Sequence record: MZ475892.1 | Length of the DNA: 64,000 nt | Reading direction: 5' to 3' (one strand) | Part shown: piece after piece, positions 4,444-57,949 of the stretch | Layout of the letters: the number at the start of each line of letters is the position of its first letter | How positions within the stretch are numbered: the first letter of the stretch is position 1 | Notes under the pieces: generated by a model | The model's input: only the letters and a program-made list of their open reading frames with translations | Database searches by the model: none | What the model was told of the DNA's origin: nothing | Made by a program: the position numbers and the translations under genes

Positions 4444-4451
4444 AAATTAGC
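4444..4451 (-). promoter_or_regulatory. GCTAATTT putative late promoter
   Basis: Exact motif, intergenic, 32 nt upstream of the ATG at 4412. Confidence 0.55.
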
Positions 4452-7503: not shown

Positions 7504-7707
7504 CTAACCAGTCAGTGTTGTCCAATCAGGTTGGCCTGATTGACCCGCTTCGGGATTCTTAACTTTCGTGTTGTTGATTGTCATACGAATCCAACGCACA
7601 GTACCGTCAGAATCCTGCCAGCGAATCTTCGTTCCACCGTATGCTAAATTAGCTACCCATCTGTCTCTGCTAGGGTCTTTGAAAGCAAGACGTGCATAAG
7701 CAGGCAT
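7504..7707 (-). CDS. Small hypothetical virion protein
   Basis: 67 aa, SD AGGAG; Trp-rich, similar in style to the N-terminus of 10634-12655. Confidence 0.55.
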   Translation of the reverse strand: MPAYARLAFKDPSRDRWVANLAYGGTKIRWQDSDGTVRWIRMTINNTKVKNPEAGQSGQPDWTTLTG

Positions 7708-17599: not shown

Positions 17600-17607
17600 A
17601 AATTAGC
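17600..17607 (-). promoter_or_regulatory. GCTAATTT putative late promoter
   Basis: Exact motif directly after a terminator and 28 nt before the ATG at 17572. Confidence 0.6.
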
Positions 17608-23645: not shown

Positions 23646-24064
23646 TATTGGGCCCTCATGGCAAACGTAACTGACTGCGTGTTTTCCAGTTTAGGACAAC
23701 GCCAGTTGATGGTACACACATAGGTCTGATCGTACTGAGCGCTCATACCACACGTTGTCCGTACATCGGTAACGTCATCAGTCAACCCGTTCGCTGGGTC
23801 TTCTAGTGCGATACGCATGTAGGTTGCAATCCACTGTGCGGTCTTATCATCAAACGGTTCGAACAGGTATTGATAGACGTCAGCACCAAACGCTTCACGC
23901 CATTTACGTGAACGCTTTCTCGTACCAACAACCATCAGAATCTTTTGGACGATGCTGTCCATGTTCTGAACGTTATCGCGAGGCTCAAGATGAATCCACA
24001 CGTTAACGTCACAGTAAACACGCTCGGAGACAGGCACGTCAATCAAACGAATAGCGATAGCCAT
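23645..24064 (-). CDS. Baseplate gp25-like protein
   Basis: 139 aa; GTRKRS...FGADVYQYLFEP motif, between PAAR and gp6. Confidence 0.8.
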   Translation of the reverse strand: MAIAIRLIDVPVSERVYCDVNVWIHLEPRDNVQNMDSIVQKILMVVGTRKRSRKWREAFGADVYQYLFEPFDDKTAQWIATYMRIALEDPANGLTDDVTDVRTTCGMSAQYDQTYVCTINWRCPKLENTQSVTFAMRAQ

Positions 24065-24354
24065 TAGCCAAATCTCACGTTGTTGCTGCCATTGGATGCG
24101 GTGTCATTGCACGTATTAGGGTCACCATTGCGCTGAGCAGGCTTACCGTTAACACGCACAGTCGAACTGGAAATAGCGTAGCCCACATGCGGTGGTTTCT
24201 TAGGAGCTGAGTGCGGTTGATACGCATCTCCATGACGCACGCTCCCCTTACCATTGATCATGACATTAGCTGAGGCTTGTACTGCGACAACAGGGTAGAA
24301 CCCGTTGTGTCCTGTGGACAGGTCTGCGCCTAACCGAATTGCTTTCTGGCCCAT
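24064..24354 (-). CDS. PAAR-like spike tip protein (T4 gp5.4-like)
   Basis: AIRLGAD...GH...VMINGKGSVRHGD...H...VRVNGKPAQRNGD...C...GSNNV. Confidence 0.9.
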   Translation of the reverse strand: MGQKAIRLGADLSTGHNGFYPVVAVQASANVMINGKGSVRHGDAYQPHSAPKKPPHVGYAISSSTVRVNGKPAQRNGDPNTCNDTASNGSNNVRFG

Positions 24355-24377
24355 TGTTATTCTCCTCTGTTAGGCAC

Positions 24378-24385
24378 AAATTAGC
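24378..24385 (-). promoter_or_regulatory. GCTAATTT putative late promoter
   Basis: Exact motif between a terminator and the PAAR ATG (24 nt upstream). Confidence 0.6.
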
Positions 24386-24403
24386 TTTATACGCGACAGA
24401 AAC

Positions 24404-24430
24404 AAAAACGGGCAGCCTAATGGCCACCCG
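24404..24430 (-). terminator. Rho-independent terminator
   Basis: - strand CGGGTGGCC-ATTA-GGCTGCCCG-TTTTTGTTT. Confidence 0.75.
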
Positions 24431-24453
24431 GTTCTTGCGCTTGGATTTTGTCG

Positions 24454-24615
24454 CTATTCCCACATCCCTCGAACGTGTGCCACTGTGCCCTCAAGCACGT
24501 AGCCGGAATGAATAGAGGAAGGATAGACTGCCTGAGGTCCTTCCTGTAACGATAACAACCGACCAAGCATTGCGATTGCTATCAGCGACAATATGAGCAG
24601 TACAATCGTCATCAT
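24454..24615 (-). CDS. Putative 53-aa single-pass membrane peptide
   Basis: Translated by hand: MMTIVLLILSLIAIAMLGRLLSLQEGPQAVYPSSIHSGYVLEGTVAHVRGMWE*. Ends just before the terminator; the SD is weak. Confidence 0.4.
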   Translation of the reverse strand: MMTIVLLILSLIAIAMLGRLLSLQEGPQAVYPSSIHSGYVLEGTVAHVRGMWE

Positions 24616-24714
24616 ATCGTCGTTACTCTTCTTTTGGCCGAACGGTATTGCATGGTTTGATCAGATTACTCCGCTGCCTATCGTCCACGATCACTTAGGT
24701 TTCAGTTTCTTCAT

Positions 24715-25580
24715 CTCTTTACCGCCTGCGCTGCGGTCAAGCCGCACACCCTGCACACGAATCTAACACAAAGGGGCGGAAGAACCTTTATGCTCGAAAC
24801 ATGCACCTGGCGAAGGAGGCCACGCATCGGTGATCTGCTGGTGTTAACACACTTTTAAGGCCTTTCTTTTGTGCACCATTCAAGAGACAGGGCCACCAGC
24901 TAGTGATCTCTTTAAGGTATCGCACTGACTTGTGAACAAGTCACGGGTTGAAAACTATACACTTCCATATGCGCATCGGGAGAAACGCATAAGGCTGATG
25001 CACAGCTTTGACTAAGAAGGATTGCGCCCGTCGCCCGACTTCACTTGGGTATCGACAATCGTTCTCTCTTACTCCCTTGAGTACAGCGCAAGGAACACTG
25101 AGTCAATGAGTAGTCTGCGGGTGTTACTCACTAGAGGGTGAAAGCCTTTTAGATTCTTTATTCTGCGCAGCACCTTAATGGACTTGAATCGCCCGCTGGA
25201 GTATCCAATAAGGCCCTCTCGGTTAGGCACCTTGCTGCACAGAAAACCCGGGGAGTACGTTACCATATAAAACGACTCTCCCCAATGCATACCAGAGCGA
25301 CTTGATATGCATCAGGCAGTGAACGTTTGCAGAAGTTCAACTGCTTTGCTTCCCGCAGAACTAGAGCCACACCGTTGAGTATACGGTCCACAGTAGTTAC
25401 ATGCCTAGAGGATATTGCCTTGGAGTTTATGTCCTATGGAATAACCGGGCTCGTCGCGTCGGTGCCACAGCAATATTCTATCATGTGGTGCTGGGGTTGT
25501 TCCCCACATTATGCGATTGCTCGCAACCAGCTGGAGGTCTGCGTCCGATGAAAAGAATAACTAAGACGCAGATGAGCTTT
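24715..25580 (+). ncRNA. Candidate large structured non-coding RNA (~0.87 kb), family unknown
   Basis: No credible ORF; about 20 adjacent or nested hairpins; most non-canonical pairs read as G-U on +; GAAA and GGGA tetraloops on +. Boundaries are approximate. Confidence 0.6.
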
Positions 25581-25672
25581 TCAGAAAAAACAGCACACCA
25601 AGAAAATTGGCTAAACTCAGTGTGCGTATAGATATTACTATCTACAATTTTTATTTACAGATTTTTCTGAGA

Positions 25673-27436
25673 TTAGAATGCCTTACGTTCAACATTCGAA
25701 TAATACGTTTCGTACGGCTCAGAATACAACTCAGGACCGCGCTGCGCACGCACAGTAACATAGCCTGTATGGCGATTCACTGCGGTGATTTCGATAGTAG
25801 GCTGTTTAGGCTTAATCGTGCCGTAGATAGGCGCGTTCATCGTTGGTGGGTCTGTCTGAATCTTGTTTACAGATTGCAGTGCAGCACCAGACAGCGTAGG
25901 GAACTTAAAGCGCAATTCAGCACGCGTGCGCCCTGTAGCGATCTTGATACTACCCGCAGGCAGTTCAACGCCGCTCTGTTTCAAGTAAGCTGCGATGCGA
26001 CGACCGATACCCGCCAATTGGTTCTTAGCGACAGGGTCCATCAGACCATCGAAGCTAATGGCTGATTGCGGTTGATTCACTGACAGATGCATACCAGTGT
26101 TGAAGTAGCCTTCTGCGAGGAAGCGATACAACTGACGAACAATCTCAGGAGTGTTCTGTGCGATCACAGGCGTCAACAACTCAGGTGGGTTGGTCTTCAT
26201 TGGGTCGCGGTATTCAACCTGACCTTGCGAGTAACCCATGCTGATATGCTTAACACGAGGATAAGCAGACTGCAACGAACCAGTAGAGCGAATCAGGATA
26301 GAGCCAGACTTCGCTTGATCATACAGCTCATCGCTGGTGGTTGTTGAGAACAGGAAGTAGTCGGTAGGCACAGCCATACGACCGATAGCTTCGATTGCTT
26401 TCGTCTGTACTTCTTTGATCGTCGAGCCGAACACTACACGACTGCGATTAGGCTGAGCGGTAGACACAGCAAAGAATGCACCGTACACCACCTTCTGGTC
26501 TTTGACGATAGGCGAAGCAGACTTAACCTTTTGACCGCCTGGCAGTGGAGGTAGCTTAACGCCCACCAGCTTGCCTTTAGTGATTGCTTTGTTAGCAACA
26601 ACAGGCTTCAAGGAAGACAGCAATTTGTTCAACTCAGACCCGTCAAGAATCTTCTCCAGCGGAACAACGAGGTTCTGCGGCAGATAGTGTTTCTTGCGCA
26701 ACGTATAGATAACGGTGTCTTTCTTGATCTGTAACGGAGTAGCCATGTTACGACCAGCTTGACCAACAGGCTGGAACGTATTCGCTTTGTCCTGACCAAC
26801 AGAGCCGAACTCTTTGTCAAACACAGACTGACCGATGATGTTCGCTGCACGCAGATGACCACGCACGTTGAACACAATCTTAGGTTCATCTTTCATGCGC
26901 AACTCATAGCGGTCACGCGTCAGATAGACCATACTGAACTTGTCGCCTTTCTCCAGCTCAAGGTCATACTCATCGTTAGCGTCATCGATAACAACTTTCT
27001 TACCCTGATAGGTAGCGTACACGCGAGCGGCAGCAGACTCCGAAGCAATCTTCAACGCTACGCCACAGTTAGACAGCGCGGTAGCATAGTTGGTTGCGTG
27101 GAACAGCGCGTCGTTCGATTCCGTGATAGCGACTTCTTTACCGCGTACGCCCAGAGCGAGGTGGATAGCGCTAGAGCTGGACATGAACACAGTGTGACCT
27201 GTATCTTCATGCTTACCAGCAAAGGACATACCACTAACACGCGACACAGACAGCGCATTCAGGTGCGGAGTAGTGAACGTATCACCCGCAGCAAAGTCAA
27301 AGATTTCACCTTGACGCCACGCGTAACCGATGTTGTTTGAACTCAAGCCAACAAACGCATCACCCACCTGTCGAATCGTAGTAGGGATAATGCTGAGATC
27401 GCGGACGATCTGATTTTGTTTCTGAATGATGGTCAT
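25673..27436 (-). CDS. Hypothetical protein, probable internal head protein
   Basis: 587 aa; contains ASESA and a copy of the domain shared with 40130, 48729 and 55962. Confidence 0.6.
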   Translation of the reverse strand: MTIIQKQNQIVRDLSIIPTTIRQVGDAFVGLSSNNIGYAWRQGEIFDFAAGDTFTTPHLNALSVSRVSGMSFAGKHEDTGHTVFMSSSSAIHLALGVRGKEVAITESNDALFHATNYATALSNCGVALKIASESAAARVYATYQGKKVVIDDANDEYDLELEKGDKFSMVYLTRDRYELRMKDEPKIVFNVRGHLRAANIIGQSVFDKEFGSVGQDKANTFQPVGQAGRNMATPLQIKKDTVIYTLRKKHYLPQNLVVPLEKILDGSELNKLLSSLKPVVANKAITKGKLVGVKLPPLPGGQKVKSASPIVKDQKVVYGAFFAVSTAQPNRSRVVFGSTIKEVQTKAIEAIGRMAVPTDYFLFSTTTSDELYDQAKSGSILIRSTGSLQSAYPRVKHISMGYSQGQVEYRDPMKTNPPELLTPVIAQNTPEIVRQLYRFLAEGYFNTGMHLSVNQPQSAISFDGLMDPVAKNQLAGIGRRIAAYLKQSGVELPAGSIKIATGRTRAELRFKFPTLSGAALQSVNKIQTDPPTMNAPIYGTIKPKQPTIEITAVNRHTGYVTVRAQRGPELYSEPYETYYSNVERKAF

Positions 27437-29963: not shown

Positions 29964-29971
29964 AAATTAGC
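29964..29971 (-). promoter_or_regulatory. GCTAATTT putative late promoter
   Basis: Exact motif 31 nt upstream of the ATG at 29933. Confidence 0.6.
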
Positions 29972-43106: not shown

Positions 43107-43114
43107 AAATTAGC
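43107..43114 (-). promoter_or_regulatory. GCTAATTT putative late promoter
   Basis: Exact motif 43 nt upstream of the sheath ATG. Confidence 0.6.
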
Positions 43115-57941: not shown

Positions 57942-57949
57942 AAATTAGC
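57942..57949 (-). promoter_or_regulatory. GCTAATTT putative late promoter
   Basis: Exact motif after a terminator and 34 nt upstream of the ATG at 57908. Confidence 0.6.

Follow-up and report, generated by a model that had tools for sequence, protein, structure and literature searches.

A candidate large structured RNA, probably of a new class, beside a small membrane-peptide gene in jumbo phages of Erwinia and Dickeya

To our knowledge, very large structured non-coding RNAs are rare; apart from those of ribosomes, GOLLD, ROOL, OLE and a few more make up the handful that is known. Each discovery of such a large RNA has opened a new line of RNA biology. OLE is a large ornate RNA of extremophilic Firmicutes that has a membrane partner, OapA, and RNAIII of Staphylococcus is a long regulatory RNA that also encodes delta-haemolysin. 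GOLLD and ROOL are giant ornate RNAs of phages and prophages, which form RNA-only cages (bioRxiv 10.1101/2024.12.08.627333). The present study concerns a stretch of 64,000 nucleotides (the window) from Erwinia phage pEa_SNUABM_34 (MZ475892.1), a 264-kb jumbo phage of Erwinia amylovora, and within it a gap between genes that almost certainly encodes, on the minus strand, a conserved structured RNA of a new family. Positions are those of the window throughout; 62000 has to be added to obtain those of the record, to which the gap region is 100% identical.

The 64 kb carries 60-odd annotated genes, which share the minus strand and leave little space between them. A gap of 1318 bp (24355-25672) separates the stop of a gene for a protein of 587 amino acids (the 587-aa gene, 25673-27436) from the start of a PAAR gene (24064-24354), and every other intergenic space in the window is 92 bp or shorter. 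An earlier note on this DNA had picked out 24715-25580 as the only large stretch in the 64 kb free of open reading frames (ORFs) and had read it as a non-coding RNA of about 0.87 kb, on the plus strand and antisense to the whole late region. That there is only one such gap was confirmed. No long frame is open in it: in the window as in four relatives, each of the six frames is broken by 12-28 stops, and as all three kinds of stop occur in every frame, a reassigned stop codon was rejected as an explanation of the gap. The absence of ORFs holds within 24715-25580 but not for the true gap, inside which a conserved ORF of 53 codons was found (24615-24454). The bounds and the size had to be revised as well: the unit runs from about 25663 to 24399 and measures about 1.25 kb.

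Conserved folding and the strand that carries it

A consensus structure was computed with RNAalifold from 14 lineages (1441 columns), with the plus strand and a neighbouring coding gene of the same genomes as controls. The minus strand gave -282.9 kcal/mol and 310 pairs, 135 of which show a change on both sides. On the plus strand -161.0 kcal/mol was obtained with 227 pairs (84 compensatory), and 1441 columns of the neighbouring gene gave -164.8 kcal/mol with 269 pairs (37 compensatory). Between the window and its relatives the gap DNA has 53-61% identity, against about 70% for the flanking gene, and this divergence gives good power to detect compensatory change. Two domains were examined as covariance models, R1 (Domain 1) and R2 (Domain 2). 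In the alignment of R1, changes on both sides occurred in 19 of the 35 pairs, compared with 8.1 ± 1.8 after shuffling (0/500 shuffles reached the observed number), and 97.7% of the cells were paired, against 33-43% in slid controls. The corresponding figures for R2 were 30 of the 44 pairs, 13.3 ± 2.0 and 0/500, with 93.4% of the cells paired. By segment, compensatory pairs made up 21/45 in 25400-25145, 24/43 in 24836-24655 and 20/41 in 24548-24398; the segment 24962-24836 covaries weakly (3/14). When the window was compared with its closest distinct relative (L230, 79% identical), 15 of the 24 changed consensus pairs were still canonical, ten of these 15 through double changes; shuffles gave 8.1 ± 2.1 (2/2000). 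Folded as a single sequence, the whole unit on the minus strand had a z-score of -5.26, and two coding controls had -0.82 and +0.16. Both the folding beyond chance and the covariation among homologues are in line with what the earlier note had proposed.

Many of the helices quoted in that note proved to be real. The one at 25537-25573 is a 10-bp hairpin (25538-25576, minus strand) with compensatory changes in 9/10 pairs across lineages, those at 24968-24991 and 24991-25009 appear in model R2 as its helices 7 and 6, and the long-range pairing GCTGGTG/CACCAGC is kept with compensatory changes. Others did not hold. For the helices at 25462-25491 and 25107-25130 the consensus has alternative covarying pairings instead. 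The note's first example, the hairpin at 25131-25152, belongs to an insertion of about 19 nucleotides that is restricted to the clade of the window and is a gap in all other aligned lineages. This hairpin, to which no strand is assigned, has three A-C mismatches on the minus strand, is the sole terminator-like site on the plus strand and lies outside the conserved RNA structure.

In a strand-neutral structure, for which G-U pairs were forbidden, 77 cells held G-U and 22 held A-C, favouring the minus strand. An argument from G-U pairs for the plus strand, as made earlier from the window, fails once relatives are compared; the window's own row shows a mild bias (17 G-U against 10 A-C). The consensus contains 20 UNCG/GNRA tetraloops on the minus strand and five if read on the plus strand. 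One hairpin is GCGA-GCAA-UCGC in the window; Y3 has AUGC-UUCG-GCAU at this place, and GAGY-UUAY-GCUC is found elsewhere. The z-score of -5.26 for the whole unit compares with -1.66 on the plus strand, and within 24715-25580 the values were -3.28 and -1.92. Covariance-model matches in distant genera were all on the gene-sense strand, both strands having been searched, and the promoter-like motif and the terminator described below are both on the minus strand. Every strand-sensitive test favoured this strand, which indicates that the RNA has the same sense as the neighbouring genes and is not antisense to them.

With Rfam 15, no match at gathering score was found in the whole window, and at E<=10 the gap gave two noise matches only (12-14 bits). 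Six relatives gave no match at gathering score, and at E<=1 none was found in six relatives from four genera; these comparisons covered the loci of seven relatives in all. The families covered included GOLLD, ROOL, OLE, HEARO, raiA, group I and group II introns, RNase P, transfer-messenger RNA (tmRNA), 6S and riboswitches. ARAGORN found no tRNA or tmRNA across the 64-kb window, so that with the Rfam result the absence of a tRNA, tmRNA, RNase P or intron core, as stated before, was upheld. Full-text searches on these phages, on jumbo-phage non-coding RNAs and on new large RNA classes brought up no account of this RNA, and in two papers on large-scale RNA discovery neither these phages nor jumbo phages are named. 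The novelty that the earlier note had suspected stands, there being no strong Rfam match in the window or the relatives, and covariation and the Rfam null together support a large RNA on the scale of GOLLD and ROOL that is probably a new class.

Two other kinds of RNA were considered and rejected. A group I or group II intron was discarded since no intron covariance model matched and both neighbours are complete genes, the upstream one with its own stop. A sponge of the CsrB/RsmB type was discarded on the number of GGA motifs, 16-21 per RNA where 20-24 are expected from composition.

Signals, peptide ORF and parts of the unit

The promoter-like motif AAATCTGTAAATAAAAATTG (25645-25663, minus strand) begins 9 nucleotides past the stop of the upstream gene. 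It is nearly invariant in all relatives while its flanks diverge, and CTGTAAATA has one occurrence in the 64-kb window. Membership of the phage's common promoter class was rejected for AAATCTGTAAATAAAAATTG, as the common motif is GCTAATTT. Of the latter, 1.5 exact copies would be expected in the window and seven are present, all of them on the minus strand (4444-4451, 7646-7653, 17600-17607, 24378-24385, 29964-29971, 43107-43114 and 57942-57949). Six of the seven are upstream of genes; they usually stand 20-40 nucleotides before the start codon and twice directly after a terminator. GCTAATTT looks like the general promoter motif of the phage, and AAATCTGTAAATAAAAATTG would represent a rare class of phage promoter, from whose position the start of transcription is predicted. 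The GCTAATTT copy at 24378-24385 is just upstream of the PAAR gene and adjoins the RNA without belonging to it; as it starts the baseplate genes, the RNA unit is separate from them.

Motifs of the RNA type occur at other places too. The upstream gene is closed by an intrinsic terminator in Yoloswag and in L232, a metagenomic lineage, with the RNA motif directly behind the terminator. Yoloswag, JA11, L032 and L033 have a further copy about 50 nucleotides before the peptide ORF, and elsewhere in Y3 and SNUABM_3 the motif is found 45-60 nucleotides before ordinary genes. pEa_SNUABM_3 (L166, 842-916) carries it in tandem, 57 nucleotides apart and with a hairpin between, before a gene for a protein of 257 amino acids (PHROG 30618). 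A second exact copy of AATCTGTAAA (context AATCTGTAAACAAGATTCAG) is present in the window at 25866-25875 on the minus strand, inside the 587-aa gene and 200 nucleotides upstream of the RNA motif; this could be chance or an extra start signal.

At the other end of the unit a terminator scan revealed a strong intrinsic terminator on the minus strand, with its stem-loop at 24430-24409 and a U-tract to about 24399. The stem has nine pairs, seven of them G-C, and is followed by TTTTTGTTTC; the element is conserved in all lineages. With a promoter-like motif and a terminator of its own, both on the structured strand, the unit is predicted to be an independent RNA gene.

The ORF of 53 codons (24454-24615, minus strand), which is unannotated in MZ475892.1, would encode a peptide with an N-terminal transmembrane-like helix. 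It is open in 27/27 relatives examined and changes its length in frame. For the codons of the N-terminal helix, the entropies at the three positions are 1.02/0.55/1.00; the second position is T-rich, and hydrophobic xTx codons are kept while the letters vary across genera. This pattern is a coding signature for the ORF. The C-terminal half is poorly conserved as protein, and the 3' half of the ORF forms covarying hairpins (for example ACGU/AUGU in the window and UUGC/GUAA in Alexandra); the start region lies in a predicted local hairpin. No match of the peptide was found in Pfam, PHROG or NCBIfam, and among 5.8 billion proteins there was one, from a near-identical phage. In Yoloswag and Rivsvirus the ORF is annotated as a coding sequence. 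RNA and peptide ORF occur together in all lineages examined. Accessory genes stand between them in six lineages, in four of which the ORF has its own copy of the motif; an exact copy of the RNA-type motif before the peptide ORF was not found in Rivsvirus or JA29. The idea of a purely non-coding RNA, as put forward earlier, has to be amended accordingly: it applies to the first 1.0 kb or so, and the 3' end carries the small membrane-peptide ORF.

From its 5' end, the RNA is composed of the following parts, all on the minus strand. A hairpin read from the sequence, GAUA-GUAA-UAUC with a GNRA tetraloop (25631-25642), probably lies close to the 5' end or directly at it; most relatives have it unchanged, and in L025 and L231 it is GAAU-AGUA-AUUC, two stem pairs being swapped. 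A 5' hairpin formed by AUCUGUAA and UUGCAGAU was rejected as an RNA element. It is not kept in L025, and the conservation of these stretches is thus better read as a DNA signal. The multi-domain folded body extends over about 1.0 kb (24620-25640) and is non-coding, as judged from the RNAalifold structure and the absence of an open frame. Domain 1 (25395-25540), with an R1 score of 110 bits here and of 117-170 bits in relatives, comprises a core CCUCCAGC...GG that is invariant, a hairpin capped by GNRA or UUCG and a three-helix arm. Among the middle helices (25145-25400; 45 predicted consensus pairs) are CCUGAUGCAYA...UGUGCAUUGGG, a hairpin that is conserved, and a second hairpin, of 10 bp, which encloses the invariant loop region CCAGCGGACGA. 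Domain 2 (24962-25120; 122 bits with R2) is a four-way arrangement followed by two terminal hairpins. The next domain (24836-24962) is closed by the long-range helix GCUGG/CCAGC, with compensatory changes in 2/5 closing pairs; its 5' half aligned too poorly for modelling. Domain 4 (24655-24836) has two hairpins, one long and bipartite and the other small, together with a second AAGUGAUG...GGRCGA module. The RNA is completed by a three-way junction (24399-24548; 41 pairs, found in all lineages), which shares sequence with the last part of the ORF, and by the terminator behind it.

The module AAGUGAUG...UGGRCGAYG is present twice, at about 25050-25025 and 24705-24675, and in relatives (L002-L011) positions 65-91 of R2 match Domain 4 as a second site. 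The CCAGCGGACGA stretch at about 25200 is related to it. The copies may reflect an internal duplication or a repeated binding site. Stretches that are invariant and unpaired are CCUCCAGC, GUAAUCGUGAGGA and CCAGCGGACGA, and a loop UGCCCUUAACA is common to Alexandravirus and Salmondvirus on unrelated stems. Together, the invariant unpaired stretches, the UGCCCUUAACA loop and the repeated module suggest a tertiary fold or sites for protein. Inspection by eye for a pairing of the invariant CCUCC with a Shine-Dalgarno-like sequence, an 11-nucleotide tetraloop receptor and a loop-loop pairing of UGCCCUUAACA revealed none that was conserved enough to be claimed.

Distribution and architecture of the locus

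Homologues occupy the corresponding position in Alexandravirus, Sasquatchvirus, Salmondvirus, Rivsvirus, Yoloswagvirus and metagenomic lineages, and the conservation of the RNA extends to at least five genera of Erwinia/Dickeya jumbo phages. In Alexandravirus and Sasquatchvirus the gap is present in every genome, at the same place and with a length of 1267-1456 bp, and it is also found in IMG/VR and JGI contigs and in Logan assemblies. In the distant genera the region before the PAAR gene is 1.7-2.4 kb long and shows, in order, the motif, 0.6-1.1 kb free of genes, one to six accessory genes, the peptide ORF, further folded RNA, a terminator and the PAAR gene. These genera were searched with R1 and R2 with the filters off; with default filters they were missed by R1. 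The covariance models were calibrated in a shortened run that makes weak E-values rough, and R2 gave 30.8 bits (E=4e-8) in JA11, 30.0 in JA29, 21.9 in L033, 18.7 (E=2e-4) in Rivsvirus, 16.1 in L032 and 12.7 (E=0.013) in Yoloswag. All these matches lie in the gene-free part, and each ends 20-45 nucleotides before the first accessory gene. R1 gave weak syntenic matches in Salmondvirus (E about 0.007), where the core helix is AGCCAG/CUGGC in place of AGCCGG/CCGGC. A lineage without the cassette (L232, 47%) has a terminator, the motif, about 790 nucleotides without ORFs, two small membrane-type ORFs and a terminator.

The conserved core of the RNA corresponds to 25540-24962 of the window. The part at 24962-24640, which covaries there too, may be an expansion of Alexandravirus-like clades. 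Scanning of IMG/VR with a first conserved motif returned the same clade only; with a second motif 72 matches were obtained, and none of the 59 checked outside the clade passed R2.

The accessory genes, which form a variable set, occupy 5985-6775 in L048, 6031-7099 in L049, 6019-6477 in L050, 5476-6547 in L032 and 5874-6280 in L033. One family is recurrent among them (PHROG 1761/5120, motif AEKSAGLRKLLEAKDC). The locus looks like a hot spot for the insertion of small accessory genes. In several genera, the interval from the terminator to the PAAR gene contains a lysine-rich ORF of 40-51 codons (...PAKGPKIP...; L002 2617-2739, L003 in the region 1000-1125, L048 7259-7414, L049 7589-7714, L032 6943-7071). 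It is absent from the window, where the terminator directly precedes GCTAATTT and PAAR.

GenBank records place ORFs inside the gaps of relatives (L005 3900-4043, L008 2500-2649, L009 2542-3106, L011 2388-2549). These are on either strand, are not conserved and run across covarying helices, and are probably mis-annotations.

The gene upstream of the RNA precedes it in every lineage. The sole match of its 587-aa product is Pfam KMPT-N (PF20294, E=8e-20) at residues 139-201, and no result of the PDB sequence, NCBIfam or PHROGs searches pointed to a function; its earlier description as a spike gene was not borne out. Relatives of this protein at 42-52% identity occur in Yoloswagvirus, Rivsvirus, Salmondvirus and a Yersinia phage, the last of which is known through this protein alone and lies outside the comparison of the locus. 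Downstream, the identification of a PAAR gene was correct (Pfam PAAR_motif, E=2.5e-8). This gene is the first of the baseplate cluster and has its own promoter-like motif, ribosome-binding site and start.

Possible function, alternatives and known large RNAs

The results can be brought together in the proposal of one minus-strand RNA unit, with a body that functions as RNA and works with the membrane peptide. Transcription would start a few bases past AAATCTGTAAATAAAAATTG, at about 25640, and would stop at the intrinsic terminator at about 24400, which would give a product of about 1.25 kb. The first 1.0 kb of this RNA would be non-coding, with at least six helical domains kept by compensatory mutation in at least five genera, and its last 0.25 kb would encode a peptide of 47-78 residues with one transmembrane helix, in a coding stretch that is itself tightly folded. 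The body might be a compact scaffold or ribonucleoprotein, which would bind protein through the invariant loops and the repeated AAGUGAUG...GGRCGA modules, and might act with the co-regulated membrane peptide as OLE does with OapA or RNAIII with delta-haemolysin. For this statement as a whole we regard the case for and the case against as about evenly balanced.

Several points weigh against it. The discrete transcript and both of its ends are predictions from the DNA alone, and the scaffold or ribonucleoprotein function of the body is proposed by analogy. No protein partner, target or tertiary contact of the RNA was identified, and the peptide belongs to no known family in Pfam, PHROG or NCBIfam. 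The alignments were sequence-based (MAFFT) at 55-60% identity and are imperfect, so that the fold is a draft whose details will change; 26 consensus pairs are non-canonical in the window's own row. In the distant genera, finally, Domain 2 ends shortly (20-45 nucleotides) before the first accessory gene with no terminator between, as a leader would.

This last arrangement, seen for the last Domain 2 hairpin in Salmondvirus, Rivsvirus, Yoloswagvirus, L032 and L033, is the first argument for the main alternative, a giant cis-acting leader. The folded 0.65-1.0 kb would then serve the small genes downstream as their 5' untranslated region and would control their translation, stability or timing, for instance through a ribosome-binding site that is hidden until processing or refolding, in the manner of hok. 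Type I toxin mRNAs of the hok/sok kind carry a small hydrophobic peptide on a highly folded RNA. The unit resembles them in its small, hydrophobic, type I toxin-like peptide, in its folded, terminator-ended RNA and in the start region of the ORF being in a predicted hairpin; moreover, no terminator separates the body from the peptide ORF in the window. However, the leader of such mRNAs has about 0.1-0.2 kb where this one would have about 1 kb, and no known bacterial or phage leader comes near this size or this number of covarying domains. The body is kept with or without cassette genes behind it, and where cassettes exist the peptide often has its own promoter-like copy and hence no need of a leader. 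An antisense RNA gene was not detected: the plus strand showed no conserved promoter or terminator in a sigma-70 and terminator scan, which phage-specific promoters would escape. We consider a giant leader possible but rather unlikely; it is compatible with a functional RNA unit, and both can be true. The distance from motif to start is about 1030 nucleotides here and 650-790 in other genera, against 45-60 for other copies of the motif. On the proposal put forward here, the RNA would be more than a leader for the peptide gene and its body would act as an RNA in its own right.

The remaining alternatives are all far less probable. One is an element that acts at the level of DNA, through hairpins in single-stranded DNA, or as a primer of replication like RNA II of ColE1, the primer transcript at the replication origin of that plasmid. 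The locus shares with RNA II a dedicated promoter or promoter-like motif and a long, folded, non-coding transcript, here in the sole large intergenic region. It lacks origin features: the genes do not switch strand, the cumulative GC skew has only a shallow local dip at the gap, and no repeat arrays or iterons were noted, no repeat scan having been made. Unlike RNA II, the unit is terminator-ended and contains a (predicted) translated ORF, and the UUCG and GNRA loops and heavy use of G-U point to RNA, which makes a DNA-level or priming role very improbable. Of similarly low probability is a 3' untranslated tail of the upstream operon (genes 29933-25673) that would serve solely as a stabiliser against exonuclease. 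In the window no terminator stands between the 587-aa gene and the motif, and read-through from the GCTAATTT copy at 29964-29971 is possible; in Yoloswag and L232, however, a terminator does separate the upstream gene from the RNA and its motif, and a covarying multi-domain structure of 1 kb far exceeds what a stabiliser needs.

Less probable still is a functional plus-strand RNA that would be antisense to the entire gene cluster. Helices are largely strand-symmetric, and the plus strand has its own z-score of -1.9 within 24715-25580, its 84 compensatory pairs and only a mild bias against it in the window's row (17:10). Against this stand the energies (-161 versus -283 kcal/mol), the G-U:A-C ratio of 77:22 and the tetraloops (20:5), all for the minus strand; the conserved promoter-like motif and the terminator are on the minus strand as well, and the sole terminator-like site and the best plus-only hairpin (25131-25152) are confined to the window's clade. 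Decayed or unrecognised coding (a pseudogene, a reassigned stop or several small ORFs) can practically be dismissed: the peptide ORF is real and some GenBank records annotate ORFs of 40-155 codons in the gap, but these vary in place and strand and cross covarying helices, the six frames hold 12-28 stops of all three kinds, and substitutions fall in compensating pairs without codon periodicity except in the membrane helix of the peptide.

A more far-reaching form of the proposal of an RNA unit that works with its membrane peptide is speculative and rather improbable: a new ornate RNA class, larger than GOLLD and specific to this family of enterobacterial jumbo phages, that would form a ribonucleoprotein with the co-encoded peptide, a membrane-tethered RNA machine or scaffold made by the phage and active during infection, while its locus would double as an insertion hot spot. 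The predicted RNA is longer than GOLLD, ROOL and OLE, its covariation is unusually clear and its start and stop signals are recognisable. It belongs to cultured lytic phages of tractable hosts, in which expression, structure and partners are directly examinable, and the constant pairing of RNA and membrane peptide offers a concrete, testable hypothesis. The analysis also corrects public annotation, several GenBank records having spurious ORFs on the RNA and most missing the real peptide gene.

Among the described systems, GOLLD and ROOL are like this RNA in exceeding 0.5 kb, in having multiple domains supported by covariation, and in being non-coding and phage-borne. In contrast to them, the RNA is matched by neither covariance model at E<=10, has no tRNA genes nearby and lies between a KMPT-N gene and baseplate genes; it is longer, belongs to jumbo phages of enterobacterial hosts, carries a small ORF at its 3' end and is known here from sequence alone. 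With RNAIII it shares a long course of many hairpins and a short membrane peptide on the same predicted transcript, but it is more than twice as long, has no sequence relation to it, and no evident C-rich or target-pairing loops were identified. Unlike OLE the present RNA is a phage element and is without an Rfam match, and the peptide differs from OapA in having about 50 residues and one helix, with no relation detectable (no direct test of homology was made). OLE and OapA offer a likeness of arrangement only, a large structured RNA and a gene for a membrane protein that are kept together.

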